Origin: Syncephalis fuscata S228 | Lineage: Eukaryota; Fungi; Zoopagomycota | Assembly (NCBI GenBank): GCA_025786725.1 | Contig: JAHLTZ010000009.1 | Span: forward strand, 434,001 to 498,000 | Reading direction: 5' to 3' | Length of the DNA stretch: 64,000 nt | Shown: in pieces, positions 1,611 to 62,655 of the stretch | Numbering within the stretch: the first letter of the stretch is position 1 | Layout: the number at the start of each line of letters is the position of its first letter | Translations under genes and position numbers: made by a program | Notes under the pieces: generated by a model | Database searches by the model: none | Told to the model about the DNA's origin: nothing | The model's input: only the letters and a program-made list of their open reading frames with translations

Positions 1611-3131
1611 CATAGCATTCCATAAATAAGCAGCAAATACTATGCGGCCGGACCGTAATTCAGTTGATACCAGCATTCTCTTTAGTTTCAGTAAAATAAA
1701 ACGCTAGCATTTATTCTTTTATTATATTCATTACTTTACTAACTGCATGTTCTATTCTTGTATTATTTATTTTTGTAAATGACTCATGTCAGTAAGCATT
1801 GTTTTGGCACATAATTACAACAATCAAAAGCTAATATATTTATCTATAAAAGTTTTGTACACAATCAAATTGATGATTTAAAAGTGTAATTATGACATGG
1901 ATGATAATACATATTCATCAATAATTTAAAGAAAAAAATTATATATTCCAGAAACGCCTTTCTTAGCTATCAAGGTTCACTATAGTATGTTTGGATCAAT
2001 TGCTTATACAATAGACTTGTTATGCATCACAGAAATCTTGTAAAATAAAAGATAGTTAACTGAATAGCAACTTGTATATCATATTGTTCGCAGTCACGTA
2101 GCAGCAAGATAACAATATAGGTATTAATAGAAATAAAGACCTGAAAAACGAAAAAGTTTAAAACATTGTCGTGAATCACATCAAAATTAATATTCTTGTA
2201 TATTCACGACTTAATTCTTTGTAACCAATATAAATAATTTATATAACTGTCTAATAAGATACAGTGTTTTTATTTTATTTTAGTTTTTAAAAACTATTGA
2301 AACACATTTAGATAGAATTACAGTTTGGTCAAGAAATTTAACAGTGTAAAACTATTAGTATTGCTTAAACTAAATCGCAACCATATATTTAACTAATCAG
2401 TACGTACTGTATGTTTGCTGATTGTGTATCGACTATAAGTATTACAAGAAAGACCACGCACAATAAATCACATAATCAACTTTTAAGGCATAAAAGTGCA
2501 TTGATAGAAAAAAATTAAATGTAGTACAATATTCATAATATGGTTATTTTTGGCAAAATATTGATTTTATTTAATTTAAATTATTCAAATAAAGCAATGG
2601 GACTACAGTTATTTTAATCACATTGATTATAGATACATGGGCGTTTAATCACAAAAATTGTTTATTGTTAATCAAAAATCTATGCAAACCATTCCAGCTG
2701 TCAACTTGAAATGACCAAAGTGGAATAATACATAACATACCCGAGCTGCATGAGCTGGCCAGAATGTTGTTGCTGCGTAGTTATTGAATATAGAAAGCTT
2801 ATAATAATTTAATAATTTCTTTTTTTCATATATCATTAATCGACATAAGTGTTTTGTTTTTGTAACAGTATTATCTTCAAGTTCAGTGATTCACCAATTA
2901 TTATTCAACTTGTGTTTATTGCCAGCTTAGATGATGCAAAATCTGCAGCTGACGTCGTGTACATGCTTGACTAAATACCCGTGTACCCACGGCAATTGCC
3001 ATGCATGAGGCACAAAAACCGGTAGTGACCCTTGTTTAATATCACATTGCAAAACACTCAGATTTATGCTTCTACACGTCTATTATTTTATCATTTACAC
3101 ACTACTGTTTTCGCAATATACAAAACCAAAA

Positions 3132-4101
3132 ATGCCGTTTATTAATTATACCGATCCAACGCAAACTGAATGGAGGCATAATTCTACAAAGCAATGGGGT
3201 ATTCCTCTCCATCCATTTGGTGAAATAAGCGTGCCTGATTTTTTAATGGATGCTTCAGGTCATATCGACGAGCAGCGTCTTCGTTTAATAGGCGTGCAAC
3301 TTCAAATGATATTTTCTGTTACAATGCTTTGTATTTTTGTACACAATATTGTTATAACTACCAAAATGACCATATCGCGACCGCGTAGTATGTTTTCATG
3401 GTGCTGTTTACGCTTGCTGTTATTGGTACTTTGTATAACATAATGCATATAGTCATGTTGATGGGCTATGGCCTTAATTGTAGAATGCTGGTATGGTCAG
3501 CCGGGTTTTTTACTTCACTAGGAATGATCTTTAATAGCTTAATTCTTCTTTTGAAAGTCCACTTGGTTCTCTATCAAAAAAAGTGGATTATCTATGTTGG
3601 CATTCTCCTTATATTGCCGCAAATAGGTTATACTTTTATTTTGATATACTACTCTTTCTTTACTTTGAAAGCGAAACTCGGCTGCGCATCTACTATCCAC
3701 CTATTTTTCTTTGGTACTGGATTGGCGTAAATACACCCATCAATATTTTTTTCAGCCATCTTCTGCCGTATTGCTTTAAGCAGTATCGTTTGTTTGGATC
3801 TGATGCGTGGAGGCGACTAGCACGGGATGGGATACAGACATATGTCTGGCATTATTAACCAATATTATTTGTTGCACCCTTATAATTAGTCGTTTCGACG
3901 ATGCTAATAGCGATATGCTTTTTCCCATCGACTGGTAAGCATTGATAATTATTGCATGTATATATCTAATATATTTATAGGATGATTGTTGCAACCATAT
4001 TGATTAGACATTGTGAGAAGATGGGAAATAACAATCAATCTGCGTATCGTCCCAAGACTTATAATATACTGCATCTATCTCAAATTGTCACTGCAAGATA
4101 A
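3132..4101 (+). CDS. GPCR-like multi-TM family, type A copy 1 (MPFINYTDP...), apparent frameshifts
   Basis: ORF pieces 3066-3443, 3398-3730, 3583-3858. Family motifs WGIPLHP, NCR, WYW, KQYRLFGSDAWRRLARDGIQT. Intron 3935-3980, last exon ends SQIVTAR*. Confidence 0.75.
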
Positions 4102-7621: not shown

Positions 7622-8649
7622 TCATACCAACAAATGTTGATTCGAAAAATCAGAATGCATATGATGATCTATAGACTTTACAGTAGCAATTTGAGATAAA
7701 TGAAGCATATGCTCGGTTTTTGGTTGGTGTGCAGAACCAACACTTTTGCCTATATTTTGACAATGATGGACTAATATTGTTGTGACAACTACCCTGTGTG
7801 CCTATTAGTTTTATGTAAACAGTTATTTACCATTACTTACCAATCTAAGATAAAGAATTGATCAGAATAGGCTTTGCCTATAAACATGATTACGATAACT
7901 AAGCAAATGATGTTGCATAGTGTGGCCAAAAACATTGTTTGTATTCCATCGCGCGCAAGTTTCTTCCATGCATCCGATCCAAATAAACGATACTGTTTTA
8001 GAGCAACGTAGCAAAAGATGGATGAGAATAGCACATTGATCGGTGCATTGGCTAAAAACCAGTACCAGATAGTAGGCTGATGATAGTAATTTACGCAGCC
8101 CTCTTTTTCTTCTATAATAATATATCCACAATTAATTACAATGGGAGCATAGACGAGCTGTGGCAGTATAAATGGAATACTGATATAAAGTACCCATTTT
8201 TGCCGACAAAGCACCAGATAGGCCTTTTGAAGCAGTATTAAACTGTTGCCAATCATCGTAAATGACATACTGAATAGAATAATCCATATCATAATCCGGC
8301 AATTACCAAGGAGATTCATGAATATAAATATACTCGTCAAACTAGTTGTCATATTTAGAACAGAAGGGATTAGACAGCACCATGAGATTATCCTATAAGG
8401 TCGTGCTATGACCATTTTACTGGCAACAGCAAGATTGCGTCCAAATATAAAAGACGCTATAACAATCATTACAATTTGAGCTTGTGCACCAAGTAGTCGA
8501 AGGCGCTGTTTATAAATGTCGCCAGAAGCCTCCATAAAGAAATCAAATACGTGTATTTCGCCAAGTGGATGAAGCGGAATTCCCAATTGCTTCATGTTGC
8601 TGTTAATCCATTCAGCGTATTGGTGGCTATTATAATCAATGGCTGGCAT
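7622..8649 (-). CDS. GPCR-like multi-TM family, type B copy (MPAIDYNS...), intact
   Basis: Uninterrupted 270-aa exon with multiple TM segments and the LARDGIQT motif. Intron after ILDW (about 7794-7840), second exon WVVVTTILVHHC...QHLLV*. Confidence 0.8.
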
Positions 8650-9735: not shown

Positions 9736-10710
9736 ATGCCATTTATTAACTATACAGACCCAAAGCAAACTGAGTGGATACATAATGCTACAAAGCAGTG
9801 GAGCATACCGCTCAATCCACTTGGTGAAATGAGTGTGCCTGATTTTTTGATGGAAGCTTCAGGTCATATTGATGAACAACACCTTCGTTTAGCGGCCATA
9901 CAAGTTCAGCTTGTATTTTCCGTTATAATGCTTTATATCTTTGCACACAATAGCATTATAGCTACCAAAATGATTATATCAAGGCCACATAGCAAGTTTT
10001 CATGGTGCTGTTTAACACTTGCTGCTGCTGGTGCCATATCCAGTATAATGCACATATTTATGTTGACGAGCCATGTCATTAACTGTAGAATGCTGGTATG
10101 GTCGTCTGGATTTTTTATTTCATTAGGAATGATCTTCAATAGCGCGATTCTTCTTTTAAAGTTCATTTGGTTCTTTATCAAAAAAAGTGGATCACTTATA
10201 TTGGCATTCTTTTTATACTGCCGCAAGTAGGCTATGGTTTTATTTTAATATACTACTCTTTTTTACTTTGGAGATCAAACTCGGCTGCGCAATCTACTAT
10301 CCATCCATTCTGCTTTGGTACTGGATTGGCGTAAATACACCCATCAATATATTCTTTTCAGCCATCTTCTGCCGTATTGCTTTTAAGCAGTATCGCCTAT
10401 TTGGATCTGATGCATGGAAACGACTAGCACGAGATGGAATACAAACGATATGCCTGGCCTTATTAACCAATTTTGTTTGCTGCATAGCCATAGCTAGTCA
10501 TTACGGTGATACTAACCTTGATATACTTTTTCTTGCCGATTGGTAAGTACTGGTGCTTAATTGTATGTATATAGCTAATATATTTATAGGATGGTTGTTG
10601 GAACCATATTGATTAGACATTGTGAGAAGATGGGAAATAGAAATCACACTGGATATAGTCCTAAAACTAATCATATGGTCCACATGTCACAAATTGTTAC
10701 TGCAAGATAA
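9736..10710 (+). CDS. GPCR-like multi-TM family, type A copy 2
   Basis: ORFs 9736-10230 and 10187-10546 with the same motifs. Intron after ADW, last exon ends SQIVTAR*. Confidence 0.75.
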
Positions 10711-11658
10711 ATAGGCTAATGCATCAATATCTTGCATCTAACTTATTATAAATGCGGATTGTATATAGGCAATACAATATTAAAGTAATTTAAATTCTTT
10801 TATAAAAACATTACAATTGTTATTTACAAATTGCATTTAAGAGTATGTCACTAATTAACACTAAATAAATCGACAATGATATATAACTAGTAGTACAAAT
10901 AATTTGGATAGAAATGGTAGGTTTGATAAGCAAAGCACTTGTTTTATTTTTATTAAACTGGTGGTTTGTTGGTTTATATTCTAGAGTATGCTACTGTGCT
11001 TTCTATTATTTAACAAGTTTAACTGTTATGTCTTTACGCAAATCGATCTATGGACGAAAGACGAAGGTATCAATTTTACATAATACCTATTCAATGTACC
11101 ATTTTATTAATAAATTATTTTTTTATTGGTAATGTGTTATAAGAATTAAACTTTCATACTCATTTAAGCAATATTACAAATCAATAAAATCATAAATTTT
11201 AATGATTTAGCAATAATCTGTGATAAGGGCAGAATTGTTGTATAATTCATGTTTATCAATTATCCAATATTACAACTTATCAACTATTAATGTCAATACA
11301 AAAAGATACTATAAAAACATTGTAAGATTATATAGCTAGCCCATAAATCTACTTAATTGATACACAATACAATTGTATACTAATGCCACTCAATAAGTAT
11401 TTAATCTATTCAATAAATAAATAATTTGGTTTAGTATTATAACTACAGATATACAATATTAACGTCTTTATTAAAGTGTTAGCTAGCAATATAATACTAA
11501 TATTCACAAAAAACAAAAAATGAGTTTATAACCTATTACACCAGGTAAAGAGTTATAAAAGACTGGATCATAAAACAAAGTTACAAGCCACATTGGAAAA
11601 AATTAAAATATATGCACAGTAAACGACGCGTGTGTGTGAGAGAGAGAGCAAGTAATGG

Positions 11659-14600
11659 TTATGCGGATAGCATAAACAAATCATTGGCATCAAGTTGAAG
11701 ATCAGCACTGGGCAGTTCTTGATCAAACATCGATGCAGATGTGGCAGATGTAGATGATATGTCGGCCATTGATGCTGTTGATTGATCGGCATTAAGAGTA
11801 TTTGAATCAATCATATGGTTGTCCATAGATGTAGGCAATGCATTCGTAGCTGCCATAACTGAAGAAAAGTCAAATATACTATCAGCTGACATAGTCGCCG
11901 AACTGAATAGCATATCATGATTGCCTTCACCGGAATTGGCCGTCGTTGTAGTTGTTGTTGGTACATCAAAGTGACCTTTGTAAAATGCCGTATTGCTATT
12001 ACTATACACAGCACCAGTAGTAGTAATAGATGATGAATCCATTAATTCAAGCCCAAGACCAGTTGTATTATTGGCCAATGGTATATCTACTGGGGAGGAA
12101 ATGGCACCATGTGATGTACTCGTTTCAGCTATTCCAGCTGATTGTGGGGGTGTGGGATCACGAATAAACGCCATTGTAGCTTCATCAAGTTCAGCCGCCG
12201 ACATACCATTCGTACTGGCTAATGATGATGGTAACATCGATGATGCACCGCCACCAATACCAAATGCATAATCAAATGTATTAATAGAACTACCTTGTTC
12301 TAGTATCGGTGCCGATTGTGGCGCATTTAATTGCAAGTTTAACATATTGGATAGTCCAGCATTTGGCATTGTCGGTGCATTCATATTAGAATTTACCTGA
12401 GGTGTAGATTGTAAAGAAAGTTGACCAGTCGGTAGACTATTAAGGGGTAATGTCGTATTAGTATCCGATAATGGCTTTGATTCTTGCCATAATTGAGATG
12501 AATTAGGTGCAGATGATGCTAGATTATGATTCATTTGAGCGGCCCATATCGTAGCTAGTGGTATATTAGGAGCAAAAGATGATAAAGAAGGTTGTTGTTG
12601 TTGTTGTTGTTGTTGTTGTTGCATCATAGCCGTTGCAAGCCATAAATTTTGCTGTTGTTCTGCAGTAATCCCTCCTGGGGATGCCACTACTGGGTGATGT
12701 TGCAAATTGCTTAATGGGTTACTTGGCTGTTCAGTAAATGAGCTGGATCCAGAGAGCTGTGATTTCATCTGTGACTGTAGTCGCTTTCCTCGTTTGTTAT
12801 TATTCATCGTATTAATAGATTGTGAAATACGACGTGGTGATGGTGGAATGGCCGCACTTAATGAACGAGAACGACCAGCCATTGATGCAGCCATCTTGTG
12901 ATTTTGAACACGATTTGTACCATCATCGTCATTAACCGTTTCAAGTGTTTCATTGGCACTGGCAATAGATAATGCAGGCGAGTTGGGCTCATTCTGCTCA
13001 TTGGATGTTGATACAGGTGATCCACCTACTAAAGACATATCATATTGAGTAGGCATCCAATTGCGTCGCATGGCCATGGCTCGTTGATTATTTAACATCG
13101 AGTTGGTGTCACAATGTAGACGTGCTCTAGCATTCTTGTCATTAACTGTAAATGTTGCTGGTCGTTTAGGTGATGAAAATGTATGCAATCCCACTGGCTC
13201 AATAGGATCATCAACTCTGAATTGATGTTGAAAGTGTGATACAGGCGGTAATGATCTGCTAGGCTGGGCCATAGCAACAGGTACTAGACAGCCAGCAGGC
13301 GCTGTACCATTAGTTGTAAATCGGTATGACTTTGCATTAATAGCTCCAAAGGATGATATTCTATTCATATTAGCGGTATTTATTGCAGCTGGTGTTGTTG
13401 CAGTTGTTGCAGCTGCCATATTGGTACCTGACATTTGGCCTGTTATATTATTTCTATTCAATGCAGATGACTGTGGCGCTAATGTCATTAAAGATTCAAC
13501 CTTGGCTTGAATAAAACTATCGTGATTAATGCCGTTATTTGACTCATTGTGCCTATCAGTCGATTTGTTCATCGCTTCATGGTTAATAGTTGTTAATAGA
13601 CGCAGTCCTGGATCGACGGTCATTATCTTTTGTATACTTTCTTGCAATGCATGACCTGGTGCTGTGGTGGTGTATTTAAATATTTGACTGGCTTGGTGTT
13701 TTTCTGTAAAATCTCTACATGGCATCCATGGTCGTTGTTGTTGTTGTTGTTGCTGTGCTGGTGCTATAGATGGTGGTGTCAACAATGCTAATGGAGAAGA
13801 TGGTCGTTGCACTGCTTTTCCTTTATTATTTGTTGCATTGTCGGTGGACTGGGTGGTAGCTTGCTTTGGTTTACTTGTCGATAATGACTTGTTATCTTTC
13901 GACGGAGTTGTCAAGGAAGCCATTTCCATCGCAAACATTGGTGGACCAGATACAGTGACTTGCATACTGCCTAGATTTGAATTGGTATTAATCTCTACGG
14001 CCATTTGAAGAATAATATTGGCCGAGTAATCTAGTAGAAATCGGACTCCTTGTTCCTGTATAACATAACGCAACGTTCTTACAGCCGGTAGATAGACACA
14101 TACTAGATCGCCATTAGACACGGATATACGGCGCCATGTACCAATAGTAAGCATATTGCATGGAATAGGAATAGGAGCTATTGCTGCAGACAGTATAGGC
14201 TGTGCTCTATGAATAATAGGCACAGCGCTGATATTATTTACCACAGCACTGTTTGATAATGGTCTAGCTGGAGCAATGGATTTAAGGTTTGAAGTAGAGC
14301 GTGGAATACTGCCAGTATCAGAAAGGGAGCGAATGAGTGGAATAGTAGGAGCGGTTCGTAGAGCAGTAATCCGTTCCATAGAAAGGTTGGCATTGGGTGT
14401 GGATACAGATGAGAGTAAATTCGGCGTATTTGATATCATATTTAAAGCAGAGTTGGTTGGAAATGTTGATAAAGAAGTGTTGTTGTTGTTGTTGTTGTTT
14501 TAACAACATCATTAGAGACTAAATTGATATTTCTTGTATTAGATAGTAAATAAGATTGATCCATCGGTATGTTAGGTGGCATAATGTTTGAAAGTCCATT

Positions 14601-15886
14601 TACCAATTTTGTCTGTTGTTGTTGTTGTTGTTGTTGATTTTGTTGATTAGTAGTAGCAGTAGCTGTCATGATAGGAAATATAATTTGTGAATAATTGGAT
14701 TGTGATGTTGTAATATTAGAAGGTTGCTTAGAGTTGTGGCTGTTATTGTTACCATGAATGTTAATGCTGTTATTATGGCTATTATGGCTACTGCTAACAT
14801 TAGATTGACTTTGATCACTATCATTACTACTACTATTATTGTTGTTGTTATTATTAATAGTATTAGTAGTAGGCGCATTTACAATAGTGGTAGATCCTTG
14901 TTGTCCCGTCTTATTAACTAAATCAGATTTGGTTTTTAATGCGGCAAAATTAAGGGCAGCACCTGGCATGACCAGCGGAACAGCGCCTGAAAACATCGAG
15001 GCTGAGGTGTGTAGAGCAGTGGCGGCCGTACTGCCAGGCGATTCCGATTTACGTTGTGCATTGCGTGCTTTGGCCCGCCTATTTTGAAACCATATCTGTA
15101 CACTTCGTTCTGTCATATGACATTGACCAGCGATCGAGGTACGCATTTTTGAACTTGGAGAAGGTGAGTCAGTAAATGCTTTTTCCAAAACCATAAGCTG
15201 CCCAGCATTAATGCGGTTCCGCTTTTTAGACCCAACATTAGGTGAAGTGCAATCGTTTGTAAAGGTAGCCGTGTCGCCTATTCTCTCGTCGTACGAAAGG
15301 TTGGTCTCTTCTGGAGATAGTAGTGTAGTAGTGTCGATGAGGTCGGCTGTTAACGGCGCCGATGCCTTCTCTTCTTCTGTCGTGGCCAATAACAACGACG
15401 ACGACAATGACGAGCGCGAAGAATCTACACCAGTACAAGCTGCACCGGCCGCTACATTCGCTACAGCGTTTGAAAGGGCTAACGAGGAGATGGGCAATGC
15501 GGTGGTCTACTATCGTCTGTGACTGTATCCTCTGTAATGTTTGTATCGGTTGAAGCAGAGGCAGAGATGGGAACACTGCCTTCGGTCATGCCACCGATGG
15601 ATGAGGCTGAAAAGAAGTCAAATCCAAATGGATTTGTTGAAAAGTTATTCAAACTGACCGGTAAATTTGAATAAGTACTTGATAGCGAATCTGTTAATGA
15701 AAGGCCAGCAAATAGATTGTCATTGAGCGTGTTGCCGTCAATGCCAACACCAGCAAGCTTACTAAAATCTACACCATCAAGTAGCATACCATCAATGCCA
15801 AGGCCTTCCGCTGCCTTGTCGTCGCTGTGGTTGTTAAACGGTAGCATCGAATACTCCTGATGAGGGCCGACCGGCGGCGTTGCCAT
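11659..15886 (-). CDS. Homeodomain transcription factor, Hoy1/Phx1-like, with polyQ/N low-complexity regions (three ORFs joined by probable indel errors near 15490 and 14500)
   Basis: Homeodomain KKRNRIN...LEKAF...ERSVQIWFQNRRAKAR. Downstream IPCNMLTIGTWRR...DLVCVY...CRDFTEKHQAS block resembles the conserved domain of Hoy1/Phx1-type fungal proteins. Confidence 0.8.
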
Positions 15887-17977: not shown

Positions 17978-18569
17978 ATGAAGCTTTTTATTGCCGTCAT
18001 TTGCATCATTGGAACAACTTTTGTAGTCAGTACATCCATAGTGAATATTAAGCCCAATCGAGCCCGCGTAGTATATTGCGATTACAATAAACATTTAAAT
18101 TAGTATATTTACTAGCATTATATTTAATGAATAATGAAGTTATGGCTATGGATTGTTGTTCCAGCACTTAATGTATATTGTCATGCATACACGACTAGTT
18201 GGTAAATCTAATAAATTTATTGATGCATTAATTTCTGATTACGTGTTAAGGTGTAGTGCGTAAACCAGCGCCATTGACTAAAGTAGTTACATAAATAGTA
18301 AATCAAACACTTTATTAAGTAGATTAATATACTATATTTACATTGATAGGACATAAATAATATTGTATGTTAACCGAAAACTTAATTGTTACTTTTATTT
18401 AACATCAATAGTTGGTAAGTGGCATTCTATATTAACAAATTATTGAATAACATATATTATGCATCGTGTGTCTAATAATTCAACATCAATAGCCGGTAAG
18501 TAATATTTTATTGTGTTAATTTATACATTAATCATATGGTATGTAATATATAAATCTATAGGCAGCTAA
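17978..18569 (+). pseudogene. Degenerate paralogue of the micro-exon secreted peptide gene
   Basis: Leader MKLFIAVICIIGTTFVVSTSIVNIKPNRAR. Candidate 3-nt exons TTG 18199-18201, TGC 18257-18259, GAC 18350-18352 (donor reads ATAAAT), TTG 18412-18414, CCG 18493-18495. Terminal exon GCAGCTAA at 18562. Confidence 0.65.
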
Positions 18570-20297: not shown

Positions 20298-25886
<5,589 letters not shown>

Positions 25887-26742: not shown

Positions 26743-28612
26743 AGCGGAGTATACGATTGTATTTGAATGTTTTCGTTAAGCCACTGGCGTAAAATTTGCG
26801 TCGTGCAATTGGAATTTATGTGTGGTGGGATGACTCGATGAATATGTTGGATGGTACTAATACTAAATATTGTGCTTAAGCAACCACTATTTATATTTGG
26901 ATGCATCATTCGCTAGCCTTAACCTGTTTATAATTGTTACAATAAGCCGGTCATTGGGACATCAAACTGCCAACAAGGCATTATATTTTCCACACGATGT
27001 AACACGGTACAAAACTAAACCGGTTATTTTATTTAGACTGCGGTATAATAGCTTGAAGCGTGTTGTTTCGGTAAAATAAACACGCCTTATTCAACATAAA
27101 ATCCACTTGACTATTAAAACACCAAGCCTGTTTTTTATTAGACTATTCGAAAACTAAAACAAAGATATTGATAACGATATTGTAATACAAATGCTCAAAT
27201 GGTGTATTATAGTCATATTTTTTAAATAGAGATATTATTACAAAATATATTAAACTTATAATCAGTAAATTATATTTCAATTTAGCTGTATAATAATATT
27301 GCTTTATAACACGCTCAAATAGTTTGTGGTACCTGTTGTGCATAACTGCAATAAAGCTGAAACAACATTCGCTTAGAAATATCTAACATTGTTTTTGTTT
27401 TCTCCTTTCCCCTTCCTTTCAACAGTCTCACAACTATGCAGAATAAATTGTTATATTGCTAATCTCATAACTGTGTAATATCACATGCCACTTTTACGTT
27501 GTCTACGTACATTATTAGCGCTTTTATGCAGTATGGTAAATAGCAGCAACCGTTAAATAACAACAGTTTGTACCATCAAAGCAACAGTGTTAAACGTGAT
27601 TTAACCAACATATTCAAGTACAGACTTTATTTGTCGCAAAACTCAACTAAATAATGTAAACACAAAAGCAAACAAATGCTAAAAGTGCTTATTAAATAGT
27701 ATAACCAATTGCCATATGATACTGAAACGCATTATGTAACATGTTGAAATACCGCCGCAATATCATGTAGTTTTCAGTCAGCTGTATATCTTTTTATAAA
27801 CCCATATATCAAACAGTACAAAATGTATTGTGTCAATACAGCTGTTAACTAAAGTATATACACTAGCAATGGTGATGAAATCAGAGAGTGGCTGGAATAC
27901 TTTATTAAATATATACTCGACATTCAATGGCTAATATGGCAATTTGTTTTTACAATGGCGTATATATAAAAATCTAACGATATTTTTTAAAATAAATTGT
28001 TCATTTGTTGCCAATAGATATAGTGCTGGATTAAACGGAAGCTTGAACTAATCAGTATATTGTTATGTTTAGAAAACTATAACTAATTTACACGCACAAT
28101 GATAGATACCTGTAAAAATACAAGCTCAATGTATTGATGCTATCAATGAAAACGATCGTCAAAGGCACAGTGATGTGCCACTACTGTTTCCGTAGAACCA
28201 ATAGATTTAATTTGCATGCATGGTCGAATTGTGTGTAACGGTATTTTACCCACTAATAGGTGTATTTCTATTATATATGTATGTACTAGATGCTTATATT
28301 GCCAAACAGATTATAGCGAAGGATTGGTTGTACAATACAACACCATCAACATATTAGTATACGTATGCATCAAGCCACCATGTGGACGTGCTGTTATTGG
28401 TTCGCATTGCACATCAATGGTACATGCCATACAGTGCATTATTTTATTCCTCAGAATAAGCATAGATTTAAATAGCTCACTAGAAATATACAACTAACCA
28501 GCAATACCATTATCACACTCTACTTTCTGCCAAATACTCACTACCATCTACTTTATACTAACCGCACTTTGTTTTCCAGCCTTCTTGCTTGTCTTAACAA
28601 TTCAATATCAAC

Positions 28613-29813
28613 ATGAAGTTTTCTATTGCCATCGTTTGCACTTTCATCGTAGCCTTTATGGCCAGTACAGCCATGGTGGATGCTATGCCAACTCTAGTTC
28701 GTCGTGGTATGTTACGGTTAAATAATTGTTTTTTAACTAAGCACTGCTTTTACTTGCCAAAATAATGTTAATAGAACGTAAGTTGCATTGTATATTAATC
28801 AATTATATACTAATCAAATACCATGTGCTGTGTGTTTAATGGTTTGGCATCAATAGCTGGTAAGTTACATCGTATATTAATTAGCTACAAATTAACATAT
28901 ACTATGCGCTGTGTATTTAATGATTTAACAGCAATAGATGGTAAGTTACATCGTATAGCAATTAACTATGCATTGACATGTGCCATGCACTGTGTTTAAT
29001 GGTTTGACATCAATAGTTAGTAAGTGACATTATAGGCTAGTTATTTATACGCTAACACATGTTATGTATTTTGTACTTAATAATCTGGCATCAATAGCTG
29101 GTAAGTTACATTGTATAGCAATTACTACGCACTAACATATGATATTCACTGCATGCTTAATGATTGGCATCAATAGCTGGTAAGTACATCGTATATCAAT
29201 CAGCTACGCACTAACCTATACCATGTACTGTTGTTCAATAATTTGACATTGATAGATGGTAAGTTACATTGTATATTAATTACTACGCATTAACATATCC
29301 TATGCAATGTGTATCTAATAATTTGACATAATAGCCGGTAAGCTACACTGTACAGCAATTAACTAATGTTAACATATGATATGCAATGCTTGTTTAATAA
29401 TTGGACATCAATAGAAGGTAGGTGACATGTATATTAATTAGCCATGTATTAACATATATTATGTAATGTGCGTTTAATGGTTTGACATTAATAGTTAGTA
29501 AGTGACATTGTATATCAATTACTACGCACTAACATATGATATGTACTGTCTGTTTAATGACTTGACATTAATAGGTCGTAAGTGATATTGTATCTCAACT
29601 AACTATGAATTAACTTATGCAATACAATGTGTATTTAATGATTTAACATCAATAGTTGGTAAGTGGCATTATATATTAACAAATTATTGAATAACATATA
29701 TTATGCATTGTGTGTCTAATAATTCAACATCAATAGCGGGTAAGTAATATTTTATCGCGTTAATTTATACATTAATCATATGGTATGTAATGTATGTATT
29801 TATAGGCAGCTAA
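28613..29813 (+). CDS. Secreted prepro-peptide encoded by exon 1, thirteen 3-nt micro-exons and a terminal exon: MKFSIAIVCTFIVAFMASTAMVDAMPTLVRREPDVTADAEVSLAGS*
   Basis: Exon 1 28613-28706, donor GTATGT. Micro-exons, each preceded by ATAG and followed by GTAAG or GTAGG: AAC 28775, CTG 28857, ATG 28938, TTA 29017, CTG 29098, CTG 29177, ATG 29256, CCG 29335, AAG 29415, TTA 29495, GTC 29575, TTG 29656, CGG 29737. Terminal exon 29806-29813 (GCAGCTAA). Confidence 0.8.
28771..29805 (+). repeat. Diverged tandem repeat of about 80 bp, about 13 units, each one intron plus one 3-nt exon
   Basis: Approximate consensus GTAAGTtacattgtatattaattaactacgcaCTAACatatgatatgcactgtgtgtTTAATgatttgacatcaaTAG-NNN, period 79-82 nt. 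Confidence 0.95.
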
Positions 29814-30399
29814 CACCAATATCTTCAAGACATTAGCATTGGCAATGTAGTTGGAATGTTAGTCCAATACACTTAGGTATATATCCGGTAACAATCAAGA
29901 CCATTTGACAATTACATCGTTATCTACTCACCTATCAATTTCTAACCAATGCTCCGATCTATTCTACATTTAATTAATAACGCCATTATACTATTAATAA
30001 GCCTGCACTTAGTTGTATCTATTTAGCCATGCAAACTTTAATAATAAATACATGGTTTTATTCTAATTAGTTTCATCAAACTCTTGCCACTATGTTTGTG
30101 TTTTATTTCCATCCCATGAGCATCGAACAATAACCAAATGTATTATCAATATATTTTTATGAGTATGCTGCATTAGCAAATAATATAGACTGACACAACA
30201 ATGATAACAACATTATTTAAATAGAATCATAAATAAAACTATCCACATATATCATAACTTCAACACAGTTATCCATACACTACTTATTGTATATTCAGTT
30301 TACTACATGTAATTTTATAATCACAAGTTACTATTAACAAGTAAATTTACTAGTATACCTTTACATTTTTCAAAGTCGCAATGTAAAATATTTATTGTA

Positions 30400-37720: not shown

Positions 37721-38144
37721 AATAGCCAACAATAAAGCTTAGCAAATAATGTTTGTGTAATGTGCGTATATATCGCCGTTTAAGCTGCCGTAATTGAAAG
37801 TTGCCACGTATCCAACAAAGAAAAAGGGCGAATAAAATTGCAGGGAAGAGACAAGATCAATGGAACAGACAAAGCTTGGGAACTGATGTTTTATTGCTAA
37901 GACAGGCTATCGGCTCCGGGCTTTAGGCAACGGCAACAGTCGCAACAGAGTGACGGGCAGTGGGACGTGCTACTATTGCGTATCTGTGTCGACTGTGTCG
38001 ACTGACGTGAATGGCACGTGTGTCGCTCAAATCGGCACATCCCCAACGAAATTACACCCGAACACTATTATCACATGTAAACGTTTGAATGTTATCATTA
38101 ATTCGGTAAATGGTGTAATATAGATATGTATTTTATTGTTATTA

Positions 38145-38547
38145 TTTTTATTTTTATTTTGAAGAGCTTGTGAGCCCCCGCTGCGCATAATTAAAGAATT
38201 TGCGCTGCTTCCCACTATATTTGGACTTTTCCAAACTTTTAACGGGTGGACTGCCACGTTTTTGCGCAAAATCTGGTCCATATAGATTTTACACGGGGGC
38301 CATCTTCCTTTAAATGGTGCTACACAGCACTATTCTCTTGAAGTTGGTCCCAATTGGGTTTTCCTCGGCTATTCTGGCCAAGGTCTTGTTTCCGGACCTA
38401 CTTATTGGGTTCTGGTTTGCAATTTGTTAACTAGAGAAAACTGGAGGGGGGGGTTTTCCACTTAAGGATTGATTCAAACTGAGGTTTGAACCCGGAGCCT
38501 TCAGCTCGGGAGACGCTGCCTTACCAACTGGGCTAGCAACGTCCCCC
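38145..38547 (-). mobile_element. tRNA-derived SINE-like element (about 403 bp) with 17-bp target-site duplication and A-rich tail
   Basis: Minus strand starts GGGGGACGTTGC-TAGCCCAGTTGG (A box)...GGTTCAAACC (B box) and ends CAAAATAAAAATAAAAA. Flanked by identical GTATTTTATTGTTATTA at 38128-38144 and 38548-38564. Confidence 0.85.
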
Positions 38548-42105: not shown

Positions 42106-42300
42106 TTATGCAGGGCATTTCTTTTGGTTAGTGCATTGATTGAGACAAACAACAGCATTTTTCTTAGTAGCAGTGCATGCATCAATGCAGTCAGTGCATC
42201 TATCACCACGACGAACTAAAGCTGGATTAGCATCCACCATAGCTGTAGCGGCTATCAAAGCCACAACGACGGTGCAAACGACGGCAATGGAAAGCTTCAT
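42106..42300 (-). CDS. Small secreted Cys-rich prepro-peptide (64 aa), intronless paralogue of the micro-exon gene
   Basis: MKLSIAVVCTVVVALIAATAMVDANPALVRR|GDRCTDCIDACTATKKNAVVCLNQCTNQKKCPA: signal peptide, dibasic RR site, 6 Cys. Confidence 0.85.
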   Translation of the reverse strand: MKLSIAVVCTVVVALIAATAMVDANPALVRRGDRCTDCIDACTATKKNAVVCLNQCTNQKKCPA

Positions 42301-45300: not shown

Positions 45301-45997
45301 TATATTTATTACCAAGTTTTAGCATTGCTTTATATTAATACTGTAGAATAGAAATTAGAATATGCACAATAGTATAGTACTTGTTTACAACAGTATTTAT
45401 TTAATTTAATTCTGATAATCTACCTAAGCAACTGTACTGCAATAGCAATACGTAATTCTGTCTGTAGGTTTTCAAGACAAGTCAATTCCAGACATACATG
45501 GTGTCAACATAAAAATCACCTATCACTGACCAAGAGCTCAGGCGAGCTATGCTAGTTACCCACCTAAAATTACTAAAAACGGCACAATGCATGACATGGC
45601 ATGAGCTGCATAATCTGAACGGATATTCGCTGCTGTACTGTTGTTGAATAAAAGATTTTACAAGAACTTAATGAGTTTATTTTTTATCTATTATTCGTCA
45701 GCATTAATGTCATAATGTTGCTGTGGCACAGTATTATCCCAAGTTTAATATTTTACTTATTATTTGGTTCAACTTGTAATTGTTGTTAGCTTGGATGTTG
45801 TGTAGTGCAGCAGTTGATGTTGCGTACATAATTGACTGAATATTCATGTACCGCATCAGTTAATATGCATGAGGAACAAAAACTGGTAATGCCCTTTGCT
45901 CCAAATATTTTATTGTGATACACTCAAATTTATGCTATTGTACTTTTATTATTTTATCATTTACGCACTACTATTTTCACAATATACAAAACCAAAA

Positions 45998-46973
45998 ATG
46001 CCGTTTATTAATTATACCGACCCAAAGCAAACCGAATGGAAACATGGTGCTACAAAGCAATGGGGCATACTGCTCAATCCACTTGGCGAAATGAGTGTAT
46101 CTGATTTTTTGATGGAGGCTTCAGGTCATATCTACGAGCAGCGTCTTCGTTTATCGGGCGTGCAACTTCAAATTGTAGTTTCTATTATAACATTTTGTAT
46201 TTTTACACACAATATTCTTGTAACTACCAAAATGACCATATTACGCTCAAATAGCATGTTTTCATGGTGCTGTTTACTACTCGCTATTAATGGCAGTACA
46301 TATAGTATAATGTTTACATCCATGCTAATGGGCTATGGCCTTAATTGTAGAATGCTGGTATGGTCAGCCGGGTTTTTTACTTCATTAGGAATGTTTTTCA
46401 ATAGCCTAACTCTTCTTTAAAAGTCCGTTTGGTTCTCTATCAAAAAAAGTGGATCACTTATGTTGGCATTCTTTTTATATTACCACACCTAGGCTATGCT
46501 TTTATCATGATATACAACTCTTTTTTTACTTTAGAGCCTCTACTCGGCTGCGCCATCTACTATCCACCTATTTTTCTTTGGTACTGGATTGGTGTAAATA
46601 CACCTATCAATGTGTTCTTTTCAACCATATTCTGCCGTATTGCTTTAAAGCAGTATCGTTTGTTTGGATCTGATGCGTGGAGGCGACTAGCACGGGATGG
46701 GATACAGACAGTATGTCTGGCATTATTAACCAATATTATTTGTTGCACCCTTATAATTAGTCGTTTCGACGATGCTAATAGCGATATGCTTTTTTCCATC
46801 GACTGGTAAGCATTGATAATTAATTGCATGTATATATCTAATATATTTTTAGGATGATTGTTGCAACCATATTGATTAGACATTGTGAGAAGATGGGAAA
46901 TAACAATCAATCTGCGTATCGTCCCAAGACTTATAATATACTGCATCTATCTCAAATTGTCACTGCAACCTAA
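45998..46973 (+). CDS. GPCR-like multi-TM family, type A copy 3
   Basis: ORFs 45896-46420 and 46429-46809 with one indel near 46417. Intron after SIDW, last exon ends SQIVTAT*. Confidence 0.75.
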
Positions 46974-59426: not shown

Positions 59427-60392
59427 TTATTTTGCAGTGGCAATTTGCGACAAATGAAGCATATGGTTAGTTTTAGGACGATATCCGGAGTTATCATTAT
59501 TTCTCATTTTTGGCAATGTTAATCAATATGGTTGCAACAATCATCCTATAAATATATTAGGTATATGTATACAATTAATTGCTAATGCTTACCAGTCGAT
59601 GGGAAAAAGTATATCGCGATTAGCATTGTCGAAACGACTAATTATAAGGGTGCAACAAATAAGATTTGTTAATAATGCCAGACATACTGTCTGTATCCCA
59701 TCCCGTGCTAGTCGTTTCCATGCATCAGATCCAAATAAGCGGTATTGATTGAAAGTAACACGGCAGAATATGATTGAAAAAAAACGTTGATGGGTGCATT
59801 CACTCCAATCCAGTACCAAAAAAAATAGTGGATAGTAGACTTCACAGCCAAGTTTCGCTTTCAGAGTAAAGAAAGAGTAGTATATCAAAATAAAAGTATA
59901 ACCATTTGCGGCAATATAAGGAGAATGCCAACATAGATAATCCACTTTTTTTGATAGAGAACCAAGTGAACTTTAAAAGAAGAAGCAAACTATTAAAGAT
60001 CATTCCTAGTGAAGTAAAAAACCCGGCTGACCATATAAGCATTCTACAATTAAGGCCATAGCCCATCAACATGACTATATGCATTATGTTATACAAAGTA
60101 CCAATACAGCAGCGTTAAACAGCACCATGAAAACATACTACGCGGTCGCGATATGGTCATTTTGGTAGTTATAACAATATTGTGTACAAAAATACAAAGC
60201 ATTGTAACAGAAAATATCATTTGAAGTTGCACGCCTATTAAACGAAGACGCTGTCATCGATATGACCTGAAGCATCCATTAAAAAATCAGGCACGCTTAT
60301 TTCACCAAATGGATGAGAGGAATACCCCATTGCTTTGTAGCATTATGCCTCCATTCAGTTTGCGTTGGATCGGTATAATTAATAAACGGCAT
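59427..60392 (-). CDS. GPCR-like multi-TM family, type A copy 4 (several indels)
   Basis: MPFINYTDPTQTEW...LARDGIQT...PIDW, intron, last exon ends SQIATAK*. The 5' part is nearly identical to copy 1. Confidence 0.7.
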
Positions 60393-61688
60393 TTGCGTTT
60401 TGTATATTGTGTAAATAGTAGTGTGTAAATGATAAAATAATAGATGTGTAGAAGCATAAGTCTGAGTGTTTTGCAATGTGATATTAAACAAGGGTCACTA
60501 CCGTTTTTGTGCCTCATGCATGGCAATTGCCGTGGGTACACGGGTATTTAGTCAAGCATGTACACGACGTCAGCTGCAGATTTTGCATCATCTAAGCTGG
60601 CAATAACACAAGTTGAATAATAGTAGTAATATATAGGCTGTTAAGTTTGAAGATAATGCTATGCCACAGCAACACAGCAACGTCAATATGACAAAGGATT
60701 TATAAAATATTAAATGCTTGTAGGATTTACATCTAGCAGAAATACAACAGCAGCATGTATAACCATGGCATGCATTGTGCCGTTTTTAGTAATTTTAGGT
60801 GGGTAACTGGCATAGCTTACCTGAGTGCTTGGTCAGTGATAGGTGATTTTTATGCTTAGATACCATGTATGTCTGAATTGACTTGTCTTAAAAACCTAAA
60901 GACAGAATCACGTATTGCTATGCAGTACAGTTGCTTAGGTAGATTATCAGAATTAAATTAAATAATACTGTTGTAAACAAGTACTATACTATTGTGCGTA
61001 TTCTAATTTTATTCTACAGTTTAATATAAAGCAAAAATAAAGCTCAATGCCTGCTATGCTAAAGACGTTGTCTATTGACTAGAATGTGTGCTAATTGTAC
61101 TATTTCCAACAGCATCAGTTACTCAATACGATTGTCATAATTGATATGCTTTGTTAGCCTTTCATACTAGTCACACTGGCTTTTTATCTTAAAAACTGGC
61201 CATTCACTTTAGTGGAATGACCTTTTTGTGGTATTTATAGCCATCCGATAACCAACATCCATATAGCACAGAATGACTAATTAACTGCGTAGCTATATTA
61301 TGATTTAATCAAAAACTAATGGTTTTACATGGTCAGTTTTAGTAGCCACAAATGCCATTGCGATTAGTATAATTCAGTGATCCATTGAGGCCTTTACTTT
61401 TAGTGGTGCGCAGCTAGCTATTCTTCTGCCATATGGCTCGTGAACGGATATCATATACATACAGCTATTCACTTCAGTATTATCGTGGCACATGCAACAA
61501 TTTCAAGATGCATGACAGATTTATGACAATAGATAATTGGTCCGTTCATATTATAGCCAGCACTTGATGGCTACAAGGCGTACTTCCTAGTTGTATCCAC
61601 ACTCTTTCAACTATTTGACCAAAGTTTTTATTAACACACACTAACACATTTATTATTGTATATTGTATTATTGCTATATATATATATA

Positions 61689-62655
61689 ATGCCAGTCATT
61701 AATTATAACAGCCATGAATATACTGAATGGATTAACAGCGACATAAAACAATGGGGAATCCGCCTTCATCCACTTGGTGAAATGCGTATATATGATTTTT
61801 TTATGGAAGCTTCTGGCGACATTGATAAACAGCGCCTTCGACTACTTAGTGTACAAGTCCAAATTGCAATGTTGTTATAGCGTCTTTTATATCTGGCGCA
61901 ATCTTGTTGTTGCCAGCAAAATGGTCATATCACGACCTCATAGCATGATATCCTGGTGCTGTTTTATTCCTTCTGTTTTAATATTATAGCTAGTTTGATG
62001 AACATATTTATATTCATAAATTTTTTGGTAATTGCCGAATTATTATATGGATTATTCTATTCAGTATGTCATTTACAATGATTGGCAACAGTTTGATACT
62101 GCTTCAAAAGACCTATCTGGTGCTTTGTCGACAAAATGGATACTTTATATTAGTATTCCATTTATAATGGCACAGCTCGCCTTTGTCCCATTACAATTTG
62201 TTATAGTTTTTTACTTTAGAAGAAAAAGTTGGTTGTATGGATTACTCCCTCAGGCTTTCTATGGTATTGGTTTCTAGTTAATGTGCCAATCAATGTGCTA
62301 TTCTCTGTTATCTTTTGCCACATTGCTTTAAAGCAGTATCGTTTATTTGGATCAGATGCATGGAAGAAATTGGCACGCGATGGAATACAAGTAATGGCTT
62401 TGGCCACGTTATGCAATACTCTTGTTCAATAACTCCTATTATGCCTATAAGCAAAGCCTATTCTGACGAATTTTTCATCATAGATTGGTAAGTAATGATA
62501 AATAGTTGTTTATATAAAACTAACATAAAAATAGGATGTTTGTTACAACAATACTAATCAATCATTGCAAAAATGCATCCAGAAATATTGGCTTTGCACA
62601 CCAACCAAAAACCGATTACATACTTAATTTATCTCAAATTGCTACTACAAAATAA
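61689..62655 (+). CDS. GPCR-like multi-TM family, type B copy 2 (many indels, possibly a pseudogene)
   Basis: MPVINYNSHEYTEW...WKKLARDGIQ...IIDW, intron, last exon ends SQIATTK*. Upstream region is homologous to 8650-9060. Confidence 0.65.

Follow-up and report, generated by a model that had tools for sequence, protein, structure and literature searches.

Consecutive 3-nt exons as the probable source of a secreted-peptide family in the mycoparasitic fungus Syncephalis fuscata

Does a tandem array that directly follows a short signal-peptide frame represent a plain repeat, or is it a coding sequence cut into exons of codon size, and if so, how are such exons joined? This question is raised by the locus at 28613-29813 of the window, by which we mean the whole 64,000-nt stretch of Syncephalis fuscata DNA analyzed here. 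S. fuscata (Zoopagomycota) is a mycoparasite whose hosts are Mucorales, and it is not pathogenic to humans, animals or crop plants. A preliminary description of this DNA had proposed a secreted-peptide gene with 14 canonical introns of listed lengths and 13 exons of 3 nt, and this arrangement was confirmed on the sequence. The gene, called gene A here, is very probably a member of a family in which exon 1 is constant and the mature peptide comes almost wholly from phase-1 3-nt exons joined in order.

Gene A lies on the plus strand; behind its signal-peptide exon, 14 canonical introns alternate with 13 exons of exactly 3 nt. Its parts are as follows.

28340-28612, plus strand: 5' flank and 5' UTR, common to other family members
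28613-28706, plus strand: exon 1, with ATG at 28613, 31 codons and one G (phase 1), ending L-V-R-R
28707-28774, plus strand: intron 1, 68 nt, GTATGT...TAG, of a first-intron type of its own that recurs at the corresponding place in the array paralogs
28775-29739, plus strand: micro-exon array of 13 phase-1 3-nt exons and 12 mutually homologous introns of 76-79 nt
28775, 28857, 28938, 29017, 29098, 29177, 29256, 29335, 29415, 29495, 29575, 29656 and 29737, plus strand: starts of the 3-nt exons
29740-29805, plus strand: last intron, 66 nt
29806-29813, plus strand: coding part of the terminal exon, the stop ending at 29813, 8 nt into the exon
29814-30081, plus strand: family-conserved 3' UTR, with AATAAA at 30043-30048

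The successive introns measure 68, 79, 78, 76, 78, 76, 76, 76, 77, 77, 77, 78, 78 and 66 nt, and Tandem Repeats Finder reports the array with a period of 81, 12.1 copies and 73% matches. All 13 of the 3-nt exons are preceded by ATAG, and GTAAG follows in 12 cases and GTAGG in one. Among spacings of 0-30 nt between YAG and a GT[AG][AG]G donor, spacing 3 is the only one enriched in the array (13 occurrences versus 1 for all others). TAG-NNN-GTRAG occurs 19 times in the window, which is six times commoner than in shuffles (3.1±1.8).

Two other points of the preliminary description agree with the sequence, namely that the array begins one base after LVRR, as exon 1 ends with these residues and a G, and that the phase-1 joined reading gives a 15-residue peptide. 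Its phrase "one codon per exon" describes the size of the exons correctly and not their register. Because exon 1 ends in phase 1, each 3-nt exon straddles two codons, providing positions 2-3 of one and position 1 of the next. Similarly, its statement that intron interiors had diverged strongly between conserved splice sites holds for the splice sites, which are intact, whereas the divergence is moderate (pairwise interior identity 74%, range 61-87%). The phase 0 and phase 2 readings of gene A were considered and rejected (codon usage -1.11; three stops).

The family of gene A can be recognized in the genome as eight array genes (gene A and seven others with 17-40 internal exons) and six intronless paralogs. 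Exon 1 is 65-77% identical to the N-termini of eight annotated S. fuscata proteins, and a profile built from these eight retrieved 16 proteins, all from S. fuscata, in a search covering proteins of 35-110 aa and a few longer ones listed. These matches suggest a prepro-peptide family that, to date, is known from S. fuscata alone. A database search with the unspliced 50-aa ORF of gene A gave no match. The members and relatives used below, taken from the window and ten further loci, are the following.

L002, L004, L005, L006, L009, L010, and L007 on the minus strand: array genes of the gene A intron unit
Paralog C, L003, L007, L008 and L017 (two): intronless genes
L017, 10001-10210: intronless gene P0016
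Window 42106-42300, minus strand: paralog C, intronless, 64 aa, with the same leader, a six-cysteine mature part and the same 5' and 3' flanks
Window 17978-18569, plus strand: paralog B, with a diverged exon 1 carrying a 1-nt gap near its end, a decayed middle and a terminal exon
L003, 3955-2960, minus strand: family pseudogene that has lost its start codon and about half of its splice sites, which served as a negative control

In the eight array genes, whose exon lists were curated by hand with a few 5' units ambiguous, 213 of 221 internal exons are 3 nt long and seven are 6, 9, 15 or 21 nt, so that 220 are multiples of three; the exception is a 2-nt exon in a G run (L004 13806). The number of 3-nt exons ranges from 13 in gene A up to 38 in the paralogs, and the mean intron length is about 78 nt. 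In L002 and L006, the exons of 15 and 21 nt produce an L-x-K-R site, as in the intronless P0004 and P0018. The 6-nt exons (L009 10491, L010 10487 and 12785, L004 11076) appear to stem from a 3-nt acceptor shift; their extra triplet is also present in the intronless P0016, which hints at descent of P0016 from an intron-bearing gene. Every intact paralog with a recognizable terminal acceptor has an in-frame stop within 8 nt of it. At L004 14859-14944 a stop is formed across the last two micro-exons, and no clear terminal acceptor is seen in L005 near 12480. Assembly errors or early decay are possible causes of the 2-nt exon of L004 and of the missing L005 acceptor.

Homology also extends beyond the coding parts. 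The segment 28340-28708 aligns to 42567-42205 at paralog C with 71% identity, and the 3' UTR of gene A is 68-75% identical to those of the paralogs, with 95% for paralog B. The latter retains two intact 3-nt exons (18412, 18493) and is probably a pseudogene. The last two units, terminal exon and UTR of gene A are 95% identical to its 3' part, implying a recent exchange of this end by conversion or duplication. At L017, extra exon-1 fragments (10780-10838 and 12050-12108) lie beside two tandem intronless genes, the 3' UTRs of which are 99% identical and the mature peptides widely different. Each of the seven array genes whose model was fetched had been mis-called or missed by the annotation, and annotated models of array genes run into introns and stop early.

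Apart from this family, the window contains at least six dispersed copies of a hydrophobic multi-pass membrane-protein family (3066-3730, 7837-8649, 9736-10546, 45896-46809, 59500-60400 and 61680-62650), which are 70-99% alike in parts and several of which are frameshifted. Two regions (20481-25886 and 11659-15886), with an ABC transporter gene and a homeodomain gene, are fragmented into several ORFs, and some of these breaks are suggestive of single-base indels in a long-read assembly that has not been polished.

Several lines of evidence indicate that the micro-exons code and are joined in order. First, the intronless paralogs can be used as natural cDNA records, with which the exons were compared triplet by triplet. 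The exons of L009 match P0016 over 35 triplets in order (68% at the nucleotide level, one 3-nt gap), with a score of 34 versus 12.4±2.1 in shuffled order (maximum 25 of 300, z=10), and 14 triplets in a row match between L005 and P0003 (83%, z=7); a weaker match was obtained for L010 and P0016 (z=4.7). The L009 and L005 matches exist in the phase-1 register only, with the other two registers at background. A tree made from exon 1 and flanks only gives the same pairings, with L005 and P0003 joined at 100% and a clade of L004, L009, L010, P0016 and paralog C at 99%. Second, codon-level signals appear when neighboring exons are joined. Stops arise at 1 of 229 adjacent junctions (the last junction of L004), versus 11.6 in shuffled order, and 0 of 20000 shuffles were as low, with the reservation that pooled P-values overstate independence because the paralogs share ancestry. 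The middle base of the exons resembles a third codon position (T 0.39 and G 0.11 versus T 0.47 and G 0.10), and codon usage is best in phase 1 for all eight array genes and fits the family in seven of them, including gene A (P=0.002).

Third, the splice sites are maintained. With an HMM built from intron interiors only, splice sites were intact in essentially all units of the intact genes; exceptions were seen where an insertion had cut an intron into halves, at the edge of a locus and in two short units. The paralog lacking its ATG, for comparison, keeps two of five donors and three of five acceptors. Near-identical units differ at 8% of flank positions and 50% of exon positions, where the flank value is biased low by the choice of nearest neighbors on flanks. 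The triplets CAG and TAG, which could act as rival acceptors, are absent among the exons (3.7 expected, P=0.03). The best branch-like motif is located near -45 in 94 of 202 array introns and mostly at -10 to -25 in the ordinary introns of the window, so the array motif lies further upstream, a point that counts against this reading. The earlier proposal of a micro-exon gene for a secreted peptide that annotation had missed is thus supported by paralogous arrays, matching intronless genes, stop avoidance, codon bias and a decayed pseudogene, and the gene appears to be real and coding, as part of a family not described before.

It could be argued that the exons are real and that variable skipping yields many peptides per gene, in the style of schistosome micro-exon genes (MEGs) or of the Tuber nank genes. 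The preliminary description had pointed to schistosome-style diversity, and as the main mode this is not borne out: skip junctions in the paralogs create stops in 176 of 3379 cases, whereas the adjacent junctions avoid them. Cysteine codons are enriched in genomic order only (P≤0.008 in four genes), long uninterrupted exon runs are preserved in the intronless copies, and Cys-spaced helical hairpins, as in the P0016 model, would be expected not to tolerate random residue loss. This explanation is unlikely, even though all exons are symmetric (phase 1-1) and the frame is kept with any subset of them, a shifted acceptor could lead to the skipping of exons that end in AG (12 AAG or GAG), and PMC4986451 and PMC9815663 report the Tuber 3-bp exons as alternatively spliced. 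Exon skipping may occur as a minor by-product. In gene A no skip creates a stop (0 of 66) and any exon order is stop-free, and its best match to the intronless paralogs (z=3.2 among 48 comparisons) is not convincing. Since gene A lacks both a close intronless sister and an exon order able to form a stop, in-order inclusion for gene A is extrapolated from the paralogs.

With the exons read in order, the likely product can be described. The exon 1 leader contains a basic residue, a hydrophobic core (hydropathy peak 3.1) and a V-D-A motif, and we infer a signal peptide cleaved after V-D-A (residue 24). The putative cleavage site is followed by a 7-residue propeptide ending R-R, and this R-R (residues 30-31) is invariant in family alignment A1. 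Kex2-type cleavage at dibasic sites is established for fungal precursors (PMC6339444, PMC9769878). Gene A is predicted to produce a 46-aa precursor, from which signal peptidase and a Kex2-type protease would release a 15-residue acidic peptide; both secretion and Kex2 processing are deduced from the sequence. A reading of this peptide as X-A/X-P dipeptide spacers was considered and is too weak to claim.

The paralogs encode either Cys-rich peptides or, behind a second K-R site, short peptides free of cysteine, and one Cys-rich subfamily was modeled as a helical hairpin (P0016 model, pLDDT 89). A Pfam search with exon 1 and the paralogs gave no significant match, and PDB sequence and Foldseek searches with the paralogs gave no significant sequence or fold match. 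From the lifestyle of the fungus, the expansion of the family and the hypervariable Cys-rich products, we consider action of the secreted peptides on the fungal host or on competitors the most likely role, with a confidence that is evenly balanced.

A different possibility is that the family is functional and that gene A itself, as a relic or a chimera of recent origin, has ceased to be expressed. Its predicted mature peptide has no resemblance to that of any paralog, its 3' units and UTR are shared at 95% with the degenerate paralog B, and no protein from the locus was among the proteins searched. However, its ATG, leader, 28 of 28 splice sites, frame and stop are all intact, its codon usage is in line with the family, and every other array gene fetched was also mis-called by the annotation. 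We therefore regard a dead gene A as quite unlikely, and a functional member of the family is preferred.

How such a gene could be spliced and evolve can be proposed as follows. Each intron of about 78 nt would be recognized by intron definition and then removed, and a 3-nt exon, never recognized alone, would join the growing upstream or downstream exon, so that the main mRNA would contain all exons in genomic order. Unequal crossing-over would duplicate or delete a unit of intron plus exon, giving exactly one residue more or fewer with no frameshift. The introns would be homogenized within a gene, and the exons would diverge under selection as protein. Now and then, a reverse-transcribed mRNA would recombine with the locus and leave an intronless copy. 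The intronless genes are not one clade (AU p=1e-9), and their polyphyly together with the retained upstream flanks fits repeated cDNA-mediated intron loss at the locus. The direction, loss rather than gain, is inferred by parsimony on an unrooted tree.

In the reverse polarity, intronless genes would be ancestral and an intron-generating element would have invaded them once per codon, and the scatter of intronless members across a tree without an outgroup can be read in this way. This is improbable, because the gene A introns are mostly closest to one another, the arrays contain runs of near-identical neighboring units as expected of tandem duplication, and the first and last introns occupy the same positions in all array genes. 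Moreover, insertion at exact 3-nt steps, always in phase 1 and in several lineages, would need a mechanism not known to us. Intron multiplication followed by loss is therefore favored.

A SINE-like element, about 400 nt in length, carries an A-rich tail, has a head that is tRNA-like by eye and is flanked by target duplications of 11-17 nt; it was observed in the following copies.

Window 38144-38547: SINE-like copy
L006, 10745-11149: SINE-like copy
L002, 11252-11569: SINE-like copy
L004, 11505-11869 and 13100-13488: two SINE-like copies
L010, 10762-11240: SINE-like copy

ARAGORN was negative on this element, and an Rfam search gave no match. The copies in the window and L006 are 99.5% identical and have target duplications of 16-17 nt, which indicates recent retrotransposition and implies that reverse transcriptase is available. 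In several array introns, related inserts are located about 19 nt downstream of the donor, with the splice sites intact.

Finally, it is highly improbable that the array is a non-coding minisatellite, grown from a duplicated splice junction inside one long intron and skipped by the transcript. In favor of this, the units are tandem repeats of 73-74% identity, and the pattern scan also picked up non-exonic repeats (CRISPR arrays, coding repeats). A neutral repeat, however, would neither conserve its splice sites as its interiors change nor be depleted of stops in a single register, and it would show neither a bias at the wobble position nor an ordered agreement with intronless coding paralogs. 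Uniform divergence along the unit and the lack of a coding signal, which such a repeat should display, are likewise not what was observed.

The preliminary description knew of no fungal equivalent, and here a precedent exists. In the nank genes (NACHT-ankyrin) of Tuber melanosporum, 3-bp exons number in the tens and are alternatively spliced (PMID 22289772, cited by PMC4986451, PMC10197012, PMC3689799 and PMC9815663), and a 2026 paper calls this arrangement a lineage-specific strategy (PMC13449251). So far as these sources describe them, the two systems share fungal origin, tens of 3-bp exons, an expanded family and a probable involvement in interactions with other organisms. They differ in that the S. 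fuscata gene belongs to the phylum Zoopagomycota and encodes a short secreted prepro-peptide, not an intracellular NLR, with no NACHT or ankyrin part; the exons encode nearly the whole mature product, the evidence favors in-order inclusion, and intronless sister copies exist. Schistosome MEGs, a family specific to Schistosomatidae, have exons mostly of 15 bp (3 or 6 to 81), introns of 0.1-5 kb and variants made by alternative splicing (10.1101/2023.06.21.545858). They resemble the S. fuscata genes in belonging to a parasite, in the signal peptide, multigene family and escape from automatic annotation, and in a coding sequence mostly made of short exons in multiples of 3 (in S. fuscata, 220 of 221). 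In contrast, the S. fuscata exons are almost all 3 nt and the introns are tandem duplicates of about 78 nt. Homology to MEGs is not expected, and all relatives found for gene A are S. fuscata proteins. Gene A is thus a member of neither family, and its architecture works like both.

As in KEX2-processed repeat proteins (KEPs; PMC6339444, PMC9769878), a predicted signal peptide and dibasic sites would allow the release of small secreted peptides. Unlike KEPs, in which the peptide core is repeated, gene A and its paralogs have a single core (some with a second K-R site), and the repetition sits in the introns and not in the protein. A looser parallel can be drawn with conotoxin-type prepro-peptide superfamilies. 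In these, the signal and pro region are conserved and the mature peptide is hypervariable and often Cys-rich, and to our knowledge they have no micro-exon array; the constant leader and variable mature part are a likeness by analogy only. Literature searches on exons of Syncephalis, microexons in Glomeromycota and intron gain through the duplication of units, in a corpus poor in subscription journals, gave nothing relevant. New against the searchable literature is a secreted-peptide family wholly encoded by phase-1 3-nt exons, with intronless sisters and evidence for in-order joining.

Codon-sized exons were also sought outside Syncephalis. At least 120 metagenome contigs match a pattern of three successive 3-nt exons, many of these loci being counted by motif only. 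Many of the listed matches consist of up to 48 intron-like units in series, in which branch motifs and variable triplets can be seen, and some are CRISPR or plain repeats. For example, L018, L055 and L106 were rejected as exon arrays and look like CRISPR (L018 was read directly). CRISPR repeats mimic the acceptor-3nt-donor motif and thus give false positives in such scans. A viral scan for the motif gave six matches, all chance or plain repeats. Two types of array among the listed matches have recognizable neighbors.

L050, 5417-6878; L032, 4917-6347; L036, 680-2248; L033, 4113-4611; and L038, L129, L021: phase-0 arrays of the NLR/HET type
L027, 1-1690, with a kinase at 1688-2997; and L062, L070, L117, L131, L133, L057 and related contigs: low-GC kinase arrays
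L035, 14-3370; and L112, L049, L019, L076, L100: long arrays of 21-48 units, observed in addition

Among the listed matches, PNP-NACHT-ankyrin and NACHT genes carry arrays at their 3' end, other arrays precede HET domains, and some follow an unassigned domain. Such a distribution suggests that the Tuber arrangement is widespread in Dikarya. The arrays of the NLR/HET type are in phase 0, unlike the phase-1 exons of S. fuscata, and contain stops in 1 of 699 exons versus 34 expected. The low-GC arrays lie upstream of tyrosine-kinase-like genes whose named relatives are Funneliformis and Rhizophagus proteins (Glomeromycota type); they join in phase 1, with stops at 0 of 117 junctions versus 4.8 expected (P=0.002), and no report of such kinase-linked arrays in Glomeromycota was found in the searched literature. 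Among the listed metagenome loci there is no homology to the Syncephalis intron unit or exon 1, so several independent origins are likely. Codon-sized exon architecture, described in the searchable literature for truffle NLRs only, seems to occur widely among fungi and to be missing from protein databases.

In conclusion, we lean slightly towards a broader view in which mature sequences are built residue by residue from up to 40 exons spliced in order, products are fixed by reverse transcription, and codon-sized arrays are a recurrent fungal device for interaction proteins. The architecture of gene A is extreme: introns account for about 96% of the gene and interrupt each codon of the mature peptide. 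It offers a natural substrate for studying the order in which the spliceosome removes adjacent short introns around minimal exons, and, in one young family, a tractable example of how introns multiply through tandem duplication and are lost wholesale. It also exposes a hidden class of candidate mycoparasite peptides. If the broader view is true, codon-sized exon arrays would be a recurrent device of fungi and not a peculiarity of Tuber, largely unseen by annotation.
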